64,000 nucleotides of DNA from Macrostomum lignano (taxonomy: Eukaryota). Within the stretch, counting starts at the first letter, position 1. The number at the start of each line of letters is the position of its first letter. The stretch is taken from positions 1 to 64,000 of the forward strand of contig NIVC01001920.1 in the NCBI GenBank assembly GCA_002269645.1. Reading direction: 5' to 3'. Positions 6,001-11,514 of the stretch are shown one piece after another. The notes under the pieces are model-generated. The model had not been told where the DNA came from. It was given only the letters and a program-made list of their open reading frames with translations, and made no database searches. The position numbers were made by a program, and so were the translations under genes.

Positions 6001-9000
6001 TTGGGGGTTTGTGAAGCTTGGAGTTGTGAATTTTGGAGGTTGTGAATTTTGGAGGTTGTGAAGCTTGGGGGTTTGTGAAGCTTGGGGGTTTGTGAAGCTT
6101 GGAGTTGTGAATTTTGGAGGTTGTGAATTTTGAATGTTGTAAATTTTTGGAGATTATGAATTTTGAGGGTTGTGAAGCTTTGGGTTATGAATTTTGGAGG
6201 TTGTGAATTTCAATGGTTGTGAAGCTTGCGGTTGTGAATTTTGGAGGTTGTGAATTTCAATGGTTGTGAAGCTTGCGGTTGTGAATTTTGGGGATTGTGA
6301 AGCTTGGGTTGTGAACTTTGGAGGTTCTGAAGTTTAGGGATTGTGAATTGTGGGGACTGTGAAGTTTGAGGATTGTAAGTTGTAAATTCGAGTCTAATTT
6401 AATTGCGAATTCGTTAATGTGAGTCAGGTATTTTTGCCATAATTTTTACGATTCAAGTTTGCTTGTTGAGGCCCTTTAGCTCAATATGTAAAGGCCAAAT
6501 GACCCCCTGTTCGACTCCTTGAGAGGCCGGATTAATCCGGAGCTCGTTCATGAGGGCCAACTCGAACTGTAAGAGTGTGCTTACACCAAAGTGAATTAAA
6601 ACCCGTATAAAAATCATCAATGAGACTCATCCCTATCCACCATCCCTTACCGTCAGGGAGTTCAAGCGCACCGAGGGAGTGTCAACCACCGACTTGGTTG
6701 GCCGCATGCTGCTGGCCACGCGGTCCCATCACTCCGCCAATGTCACAGTTGGTGACTCTGAGCGGGCCACCTTTGATCAGATGGCCACCGTGAGTTGATT
6801 CAGGCCTCTTATCGACTGACCAGGAGTTTAGAAATTAGTCTAAATTGCATCGTTCCATTCGGTAGTGCCTTAATCAGGTGGGCAAACAATCCGGATTGCT
6901 TGACCTGCGATTCTGATCACGTGACACAGTCCCACTCAGACAGCAGACAATCCCGATCACACGGCAGACAATCCCGATCAAACGGCAGACAATGTCGATC
7001 ACACAGCAGACAATGTCGATCACACGGCAGACAATGTCGATCACACGGCAGACAATGTCGATCACACGGCAGACAATGTCGATCACACAGCAGACAATCC
7101 CGATCACACAGCAGACAATGTCGATCACACAGCAGACAATGTCGATCACACAGCAGACAATGTCGATCACACGGCAGACAATGTCGATCACATGGCAGAC
7201 AATGTCGATCACACAGCAGACAATCCGATCACACAGCAGACAATCCGATCACACAGCAGACAATGTCGATCACACAGCAGACAATGTCGATCACACAGCA
7301 GACAATGTCGATCACACGGCAGACAATGTCGATCACACAGCAGACAATGTCGATCACACAGCAGACAATGTCGATCACACGGCAGACAATGTCGATCGCA
7401 CGGCAGACAATCCTGATCACACGGCAGACAATGTCGATCACACGGCAGACAATGTCGATCACACAGCAGACAATGTCGATCACACGGCAGACAATGTCGA
7501 TCACACGGCAGACAATGTCGATCACACGGCAGACAATCCCGATCACACGGCAGACAATGTCGATCACACAGCAGACAATGTCGATCACACAGCAGACAAT
7601 GTCGATCACACGGCAGACAATGTCGATCACACGGCAGACAATGTCGATCACACAGCAGACAATGTCGATCACACGGCAGACAATACCGATCACACGGCGT
7701 CACTTAATGTCTAACACTAGGACCATAAACGTTAGAATAGCTCACAACTACAAAATGAGCAGTTTTAGGCTATTTAGTAATTTGTGTGTTGTTTTCAATA
7801 TTTTTAGACTCAATCTGGAGACCATGTAACTTGGGCTACTTGATTTCAACTGTTTTCGTTAGTCCATCTTTAGAGCGTTTATATAAAAAACGACGAAAGT
7901 TTGCTAATTGTTATTCAAAGCAATATGCCTTTTTAAAACTGAATTATTGTTTAACTTCATAGCATAGGTTTCGGAGTTTTCGACCAGTTTATTCGGAAAG
8001 CTACGAACATATTATAATTTAACATTGTTATTGTTTCGTATGTCTAGAATTTTTCGCGAAAAAAATCGTTTTGATACGAGTATATACGAAACTAAAAGAT
8101 GTATTAACAAACAGCTTATGGAAACTAATTAATGAAAATTCAAAATTACTGTTCAAACGTTTTTCGTTCGCTCCCTCAACAGTTGTTGGTGATTTCCGAT
8201 TTCTATTTTCGATTCGGCAGTCTGTTTGTAAATAATTTAATTAAATTCTATTTTTTATTCTAGAATTATTTATACCGACAGTCTTTATCGCCAATTTACA
8301 TTAACTGCGTGTCCCGTTTTTTACAGGCGGCAACATCGCGCAGTCCCTACACCGCTACCTGTCAGTTCGTGCCAACCACTCAGCAACTGAAGGAGTTCTC
8401 CACTGGCCGGGCGCCTGAGCCTGGCGAGAAAATTGCCTTCGTGTGCGGCGCCTTTGATCTATTCCGTGAGTTGCGTCTGCTGTGGGTAGAGGGAGCGGCG
8501 CTTTTGATCTATTCCGTGAGTTGCGTCTGCTGTGGGTAGGGAGGGCGGCGCTTTTGATCTATTCCGTGAGTTGCGTCTGCTGTGGGTACGGGGGAGCGGC
8601 GCCTTTGATCTATTCCGTGAGTTGCGTCTGATGTGGGTACGGGGGGGGCGGCGCCTTTGATCTATTCCGTGAGTTGCGTCTGCTGTGGGTAGGGGGGCGG
8701 CGCTTTTGATCTATTCCGTGAGTTGCGTCTGCTGTGGGTAGGGGGGGGGCGGCGCTTTTGATATATTCCGTGAGTTGCGTCTGCTGTGGGTACGGGGGGG
8801 CGGCGCTTTTGATCTATTCCGTGAGTTGCGTCTGCTGTGGGTACGGGGGGGGGGCGGCGCCTTTGATCTATTCCGTGAGTTGCGTCTGATGTGGGTAGGG
8901 GGGCGGCGCTTTTGATCTACTCCGTGAGTTGCGTCTGCTGTGGGTACGGGGGGCGGCGCCTTTGATCTATTCCGTGAGTTGCGTCTGCTGTGGAGTGGGT

Positions 9001-11514: not shown

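Follow-up and report, generated by a model that had tools for sequence, protein, structure and literature searches.

A PCYT2 intron of Macrostomum lignano with 22 tandem copies of its own 5' splice site: anatomy, probable origin and consequences

How can an intron whose own 5' splice site is present 22 times still be removed so as to leave an intact enzyme, and do the copies form a device or record an accident? The question is raised by a stretch of 64,000 nucleotides (nt) from the flatworm Macrostomum lignano (assembly GCA_002269645.1, contig NIVC01001920.1, positions 1 to 64,000, forward strand; hereafter the window), in which a PCYT2-type ethanolamine-phosphate cytidylyltransferase gene carries, across the end of one exon, an array of tandem units that each hold a perfect donor. 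The array is probably an ordinary intronic minisatellite whose founding duplication happened by chance to span an exon-intron boundary, its downstream donors being decoys that are neutral or mildly deleterious. PCYT2 is the rate-limiting enzyme of phosphatidylethanolamine synthesis. The elements concerned are the following, a slash marking a splice point here and below.

8327-8465, + strand: PCYT2 exon AATSRSP..., 139 nt, whose last 21 nt are the first 21 nt of the array (translation, splice sites, alignment to 3ELB, human PCYT2)
8445-9565, + strand: minisatellite of 22 units (Tandem Repeats Finder (TRF), unit table, unit alignment)
8445-8450, + strand: left microhomology GCGGCG, inside the codons TGC GGC GCC (array edge)
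8466-8471, + strand: donor 1, TCC/GTGAGT, the sole donor giving an open reading frame (translation, 3ELB alignment)
8516-9538, + strand: donors 2-22, decoys with the identical 9-mer, each leading to a premature stop (in silico splicing)
8537-8539, + strand: in-frame TAG in unit 2, which ends every transcript from donors 3-22 (in silico splicing)
8953-9565, + strand: younger half of the array, type-B units (..GTGGAGTGGGTGG) with 0-3 pairwise differences, A' interruptions giving the 203-nt period (TRF, pairwise matrix)
9560-9565, + strand: right microhomology GCGGCG, a partial 23rd unit closing the array (array edge)
9566-9759, + strand: unique 3' part of the intron, acceptor ...tatattgcag (splice sites, sequence comparison)
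9760-9914, + strand: next PCYT2 exon, (H)VGHIDFLEK...LSVLACR, with the second HxGH motif (translation, splice sites, 3ELB alignment)

The gene lies on the + strand, with exons at 3020/21-3062, 3145-3277, 3352-3427, 3523-3589, 6657-6789, 8327-8465, 9760-9914, 10401-10466, and 11290-11514; its first coding exon was not found within the window. All eight introns are GT-AG with good consensus, and GTGAGT is the modal donor of the gene. After removal of one base (3184), the conceptual protein comprises 344 amino acids, contains two CTP_transf_like stretches (Pfam), retains both HxGH motifs (HFGH and HVGH) as well as RTEGVSTT, and aligns over residues 1-326 with human PCYT2 (PDB 3ELB, E=9.9e-134). 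In this alignment GAFDLF/HVGH matches human GAFDLFHIGH, and the productive splice is therefore 8465/9760. Moreover, 120 of 120 homologues among the database matches listed run uninterrupted across the GAFDLF-HxGH splice point.

TRF reported a single array at 8445-9565 with a period of 50, 22.1 copies, 90% matches, and a score of 1630, together with a higher-order period of 203 nt. A regular-expression search counted exactly 22 GTGAGT within it, spaced 49-54 nt from neighbour to neighbour, at 8466, 8516, 8566, 8617, 8669, 8718, 8770, 8821, 8875, 8924, 8974, 9024, 9076, 9126, 9176, 9226, 9276, 9329, 9379, 9429, 9479, and 9533. Consensus 5' splice sites are thus clustered, with 22 GTGAGT in 1.1 kb versus 19 GTRAGT in the 37.8 kb of non-array background. 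Cuts placed 21 nt upstream of every donor yield 22 units in head-to-tail order, each 49-54 nt long. A unit consists of the final 21 nt of the PCYT2 exon, GTGAGT, and 23-27 nt of intron closed by a variable G-run; its sequence is GCGGCGCC(T/C)TTGATCTATTCC / GTGAGTTGCGTCTG(C/A)TGTGG..., to which a G-rich tail is added that differs in length between units. Unit 1 opens with GCGGCGCCTTTGATCTATTCC (8445-8465, 21 nt), the exon end encoding (C)GAFDLF, and the array accordingly starts across the 5' splice site of the exon, at 8445, with the GT of the donor at 8466-8467. TCC/GTGAGT (-3 to +6) is common to all 22 donors, an identical 23-mer surrounds the donor in 18 of the 22 units, and unit u10 has CTCC, not TTCC, before the donor.

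Variation among the units is concentrated in the G-run (5-10 G per unit), the CpG-containing head, and two intron positions. The unit alignment separates units 1-10 (type A, tail GGGTA[G/C]GGGG) from units 11-22, which are near-identical (type B, tail GGAGTGGGTGG) with an A'-type unit every 4-5 units. The most divergent units stand at the edges of the array (u01, u02, and u22), and the interior and 3' units are homogenised. Copy number (22) and G-run lengths are given as assembled and depend on the quality of the assembly. With direct copies of a unit of 10-100 bp and the signature of unequal exchange, the array fits a minisatellite or variable number tandem repeat (VNTR). The coordinates, unit anatomy, and frame statements of the first-pass annotation proved correct by TRF, regular expression, and translation. 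The unit core had no exact match in JGI metagenome contigs.

What would follow from the use of each donor was examined by in silico splicing. Donor 1 joined to the acceptor at 9759 restores GAFDLF-HVGH, and no other donor does. With donor 2, 50 nt are added, the frame shifts, and a stop follows in the next exon. Each of donors 3-22 runs into the TAG at 8537-8539, even where the length of the insert is a multiple of three. The earlier claim that only the first donor is productive is borne out in silico, donors 2-22 all ending in stops, and only donor 1 is predicted to be compatible with the enzyme. Judged from this function, donor 1 is presumably used preferentially. The full 139-nt exon precedes donor 1 only, donors 2-22 being preceded by 21 exon-derived nt and a G-run, and donor 1 may be chosen since it alone stands at the end of a complete exon, through exon definition and exonic enhancers. 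The predicted RNA fold of 8400-8650 was no more stable than that of shuffles (z=+0.88) and did not set donor 1 apart; masking of the downstream donors by RNA structure was rejected on this result. The donor columns vary in 0 of 9 cases compared with 7 of 41 non-tail columns overall, which is not significant (hypergeometric P about 0.15, an estimate).

How such an array could arise is suggested by its edges. Of two GCGGCG hexamers, one would originally have belonged to the coding sequence (TGC GGC GCC) and the other to the intron, near +30; separated by about 50 nt, this pair of one exonic and one intronic copy fits as the simplest substrate for the first duplication. Mispairing of the hexamers by replication slippage or unequal exchange would have duplicated the intervening segment, which would have held the last 21 exon nt and the GTGAGT donor. 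Later unequal exchange would then have expanded this segment to about 22 units, the 3' half being the most recent; the divergent edges, homogenised interior, and higher-order repeat indicate a later, recent expansion of this kind. About 29 nt of the unit come from intron sequence that was already there, and the array is therefore the younger of the two. Sequence downstream of donor 1 would remain intronic as long as donor 1 is used, leaving the coding sequence untouched, and any use of donors 2-22 would give premature-stop transcripts that are presumably degraded by nonsense-mediated decay (NMD). The array is most likely neutral or mildly deleterious and no device.

Is one array of this kind more than the genome would be expected to yield? 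Altogether 49 tandem arrays, of which 38 measure at least 150 bp, occupy 45.8% of the 64-kb window, with units of 4-50 nt that are mostly unrelated to one another. For M. lignano, a repeat-rich flatworm, 15% tandem and simple repeats have been reported (PMC5730564), and the tandem density of the window (46% of 64 kb) is far above that figure; the GC content of the window is 46%. Three genes are located on the + strand, namely PCYT2, an SLC22/OCTN-like transporter (matching PDB 9PDQ, E=8e-21), and a DGK-theta-like kinase with C1, RA, RBD_DGKtheta, DAGK_cat, and DAGK_acc domains, for an exon of which the best named match was the fluke Opisthorchis felineus (69%). An Rfam search gave no match. 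All five long PCYT2 introns carry their own array, which accounts for 48-85% of the intron, the three array-free introns being only 74-95 nt long, and most SLC22 and DGK-theta introns also carry an array of their own. The non-array remainder of most inflated introns is only 85-230 nt, and a seed unit of 20-50 nt would therefore often touch a junction. In two other invertebrate genomes, the orthologous PCYT2 loci (L001 and L003) have compact introns and no intronic arrays, suggesting that the arrays are a property of the genome rather than of the gene. Arrays reaching close to splice sites in the three genes are as follows.

PCYT2, 24-mer array: reaches about +3 to +17 of its intron
PCYT2, 43-mer array: ends 9 nt before the acceptor, with CTAAC in its units (11 matches)
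DGK, three arrays: start at about +10, +27, and +20
SLC22, two arrays: abut acceptors

Placement was modelled for the 11 well-defined array-bearing introns of the three genes by keeping array lengths and breaking the non-array sequence at random. Six arrays lay at most 30 nt from either intron end versus 3.55 expected (P=0.08), and four lay at most 30 nt from the donor end versus 1.81 expected (P=0.08); at 50 nt, P was 0.13-0.25. A general enrichment of arrays at splice junctions was thus not established. It had been proposed that arrays are seeded from junction sequence, which holds for the array studied here (it begins 21 nt within the exon, and GCGGCG occurs at both edges) but not as a general rule (P=0.08). 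Under uniform seeding by one unit, 1.28 donor-crossing arrays are expected among 17 arrays, with P(>=1)=0.75, and a single donor-crossing array therefore fits chance. Under this model, one such array would be expected in this genome, probably as an occasional by-product of dense arrays in originally short introns. Among 35 window arrays, only the PCYT2 donor array has GTRAGT in every unit; GTRAG occurs in many units of four other arrays, and a pyrimidine tract with CAG in three. Decoy splice signals are evidently common in the introns of the window.

An arrangement comparable to that of PCYT2 is already known from the human ABCA7 intron-18 VNTR (De Roeck et al. 2018, PMC5954066), in which the array starts at the donor GT, every unit has a GT donor, and use of a downstream-unit donor retains one unit with a frameshift and premature stop, the canonical first donor nevertheless predominating. 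The PCYT2 array likewise begins at or across the donor, and its unit donors 2-22 are predicted to lead to stops; by this analogy, a donor-spanning intronic VNTR would be tolerated with mostly canonical splicing. The ABCA7 unit of 25 bp, however, starts exactly at the GT and copies no exon, whereas the PCYT2 unit of 50 nt includes 21 nt of coding sequence, and, unlike in ABCA7, each copy has the full consensus GTGAGT in an identical -3 to +6 context. The splicing and expression effects of the ABCA7 array were measured, whereas the PCYT2 array is known from sequence alone. Compared with ordinary intronic minisatellites and VNTRs (PMC10078293), the array shares head-to-tail units of 10-100 bp, unit variants, a higher-order pattern, G-rich tracts, and a position within an intron, and differs in that its first unit overlaps a coding exon and a splice junction. 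It also resembles the duplicated 5' splice site pre-mRNAs of the Eperon laboratory (PMC3413131) in having identical strong tandem donors with a spacing of at least 45 nt and one acceptor. The Eperon substrates, however, had two artificial sites in a mammalian setting, where the intron-proximal site wins, whereas the present invertebrate gene has 22 natural ones and would need the intron-distal first site for function.

The last comparison bears on the observations that weigh against a simple minisatellite with a working first donor. When mammalian extracts or HeLa cells are given two strong, identical 5' splice sites separated by 45 nt or more, splicing takes place almost wholly at the intron-proximal one (PMC3413131). 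Applied to the present locus, this rule would favour donor 22 over donor 1, and the presumed dominance of donor 1 is accordingly not assured. In addition, exon 3145-3277 has a frame break caused by one extra T at 3184 (GTC CAC T TCT GAC), and no protein relative above about 60-64% identity was found among the matches listed. The frame break may stem from an indel in the assembly, from an intron lost imprecisely, or from a lesion in a young pseudogene; an assembly error is favoured over a pseudogene lesion because the rest of the gene looks functional. That the gene copy as a whole is under relaxed constraint, as a decaying duplicate or young pseudogene in which decoy donors are tolerated, is rather unlikely. 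The extra base does disrupt the reading frame of the N-terminal catalytic domain, residues that are usually invariant differ at several places (including VYVAGAFD), and the first coding exon is not in the window, but removal of a single base gives an open reading frame (ORF) of 344 amino acids with 326 residues aligned to human PCYT2 (rounded, E=1e-133), the HxGH motifs and RTEGVSTT are intact, and the 8/8 GT-AG introns have good consensus. Moreover, a single indel resembles a long-read assembly error, and a long-dead gene would carry several lesions. An assembly artefact affecting the array itself, with the array or its G-run lengths mis-assembled or the whole array spurious, is very unlikely: although variable G-runs (5-10 G) with a nearby 1-nt frame break are typical of long-read assembly errors and array copy number is error-prone in assemblies, the units are non-identical, and their two subtypes, singleton variants, and ordered higher-order pattern are not invented by assemblers. 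Furthermore, 1.1 kb is easily spanned by single reads, and the other window arrays of at least 150 bp (about 38) show the same style.

A regulatory role is unlikely. In such a device, the 22 donors would recruit U1, a small nuclear ribonucleoprotein (snRNP), and either divert splicing, in a copy-number-dependent manner, to products with premature termination codons that are subject to NMD or serve as a local U1 platform, for example one that protects the inflated intron from premature cleavage and polyadenylation. The donors show no sign of selection beyond concerted evolution, chance seeding predicts such a case, and the array is the sole one among 35 with GTRAGT in all units, the others having unrelated units, which argues for an accident and not a system. 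These points have to be set against the perfect GTGAGT of 22 of 22 donors, which equals the modal donor of the gene, and the premature stop that follows from every alternative donor, as well as against human precedents: the length of the ABCA7 VNTR correlates with altered splicing and lower expression, ABCA7 transcripts sometimes retain one VNTR unit via a cryptic donor (PMC5954066), and cis modulation of splicing by tandem repeats is common in humans (PMC10078293). On balance, the regulatory reading is less likely than the neutral accident. It is likewise improbable that the array is a copy-number-tunable attenuator, in which a sizeable fraction of pre-mRNA would be spliced from downstream donors, in line with the intron-proximal rule for identical strong donors, and degraded by NMD, such that array length would set PCYT2 output; the broader form of this idea is a strict first-donor rule of the spliceosome.

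It had also been suggested that duplication of the junction shows intron gain in progress, as in the intron-creation model of Rogers 1989 and Hellsten et al. 2011 (PMC3265369), in which an AGGT site is duplicated, donor and acceptor come from successive copies, and the intron resembles the exons. The tandem duplication containing exon sequence and a donor GT is shared with that model, and the position of the host intron lends it some appeal. This intron, at DLF/H, is in phase 1 at a position not seen in the loci L001-L003. There FDLFHxGH is uninterrupted, and a phase-0 intron that is missing here stands 46 nt upstream instead, in front of PGDK; FDLFHxGH is likewise uninterrupted in a further 11 ORFs, located on contigs of 20 kb to 1.4 Mb. 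Intron gain is nevertheless extremely unlikely, since the duplicated segment contains a donor without an acceptor, all copies lie inside one existing intron, and the unit includes about 29 nt of pre-existing intron, so the array post-dates it. The reconstituted exon junction is TTCC/ATGT, without AGGT; the unique 194 nt at the 3' end of the intron have no similarity to the flanking exons, and the array copies have no acceptor at the needed place. Unlike in the Rogers and Hellsten cases, there is thus no AGGT, new acceptor, or new intron, and the duplication lies inside an existing one. The model was rejected because its defining features (AGGT, a duplicated acceptor, and an exon-like 3' part) are absent, and the suggestion of intron gain falls with it.

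Intron positions in PCYT2 have changed in other respects. Seven introns of the window are common to L001/L003, two are found only in the window (IRQ/AK and DLF/H), and four L001/L003 introns (GVHTD/EEI, VGR/ML, /PGDK, and DPY/) are absent from it. A distance of about 15 codons separates each window-only intron from an L001/L003 intron that is missing, the sites compared being 3063-3144 and 8466-9759 in the window, about 3000-3050 and 3940-3982 in L001, and about 3935-3988 in L003. This distribution points to a lineage in which introns have probably turned over. As a separate observation, the extra T at 3184 sits exactly at the L001/L003 intron position GVHTD/EEI, where the window has no intron.

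The main value of the array lies in its being a natural experiment on 5' splice-site choice. The intron-proximal preference of mammalian systems is opposite to what is needed here; the locus is therefore useful as a natural test, and appreciable unproductive splicing is conceivable. If the first donor is used almost exclusively, the array would be a natural 22-site counter-example to the mammalian preference, and a strict "first donor after the exon" rule, if true, would let the spliceosome of this genome cope with arrays of perfect decoys. Should downstream donors be used, the array would be a second and cleaner case, after ABCA7, of a VNTR titrating output via unproductive splicing, in this instance in a core lipid-synthesis gene. 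The wider context may outweigh the single array, as almost every long intron is inflated by a private minisatellite, and the genome lends itself to studying how, as introns grow, their splice signals persist and at times are copied.

Several other arrays in the window come close to splice signals. In the next PCYT2 intron, within 9915-10280, the 24-mer array extends in degenerate form to about 9932, and the donor region GAGTCCTTTATGAG resembles the unit CAGTCCTTTGCTCAG; the score of this match was reached by 2 of 300 shuffles, the array starting practically at the donor without the GT being copied. The 43-mer array (10614-11280, 15.7 copies) reaches to 9 nt from the acceptor AG (11288-11289), and the branch site of the intron must therefore lie inside the array, the units of which contain a branch-point-like CTAAC (11 CTRAY matches) and a pyrimidine-rich stretch. 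In the SLC22 gene, an (AATC)n array at 15357-15578 ends 12 nt before the AG at 15589-15590, and a 44-mer array at 24637-25000, with TGTTCTCCTGATTGACAG and CTCTCCAG/GT in its units, stops about 10 nt short of an acceptor near 25009. In a DGK-theta intron, within 51514-52248, the real donor at 51514 (G/GTGAGC) is followed by 13 GT[AG]AG at an exact spacing of 33 nt (51555-51951), and the 33-mer array that contains them offers a second, though weaker, example of donor-like sites in tandem. Seeding of the DGK array at 51540 from its own donor was rejected, the alignment score being equal to the shuffle median.

Further repeats were noted in the window. The tRNA T-arm-like motif GGTTCGATTCC occurs seven times versus 0.01 expected, once at 3601-3611, where the PCYT2 donor at 3590 lies 12 nt upstream, and six times within a 50-mer array of a DGK intron (46335-46632), in whose units each copy is preceded by GTGAG; the motif may be a fragment of a tRNA-derived short interspersed element (SINE). 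A tRNA-Ser called by ARAGORN at 32068-32157, over a CGG/Gly-coding repeat (32102-32152) in the C1-domain exon of DGK, is almost certainly a false positive. Interstitial telomere-type TTAGGG repeats are present at 20168-20246 and 20505-20597 in the region of the SLC22-like gene, in keeping with an animal whose telomeres consist of TTAGGG and speaking against arthropods and nematodes. Upstream of the first visible PCYT2 exon lies a CT-rich low-complexity tract of 1.4 kb (49-1474), probably intron 1, and at the other end of the window a (TGGTC)n array of at least 158 copies (63218-64000) runs off the last position.

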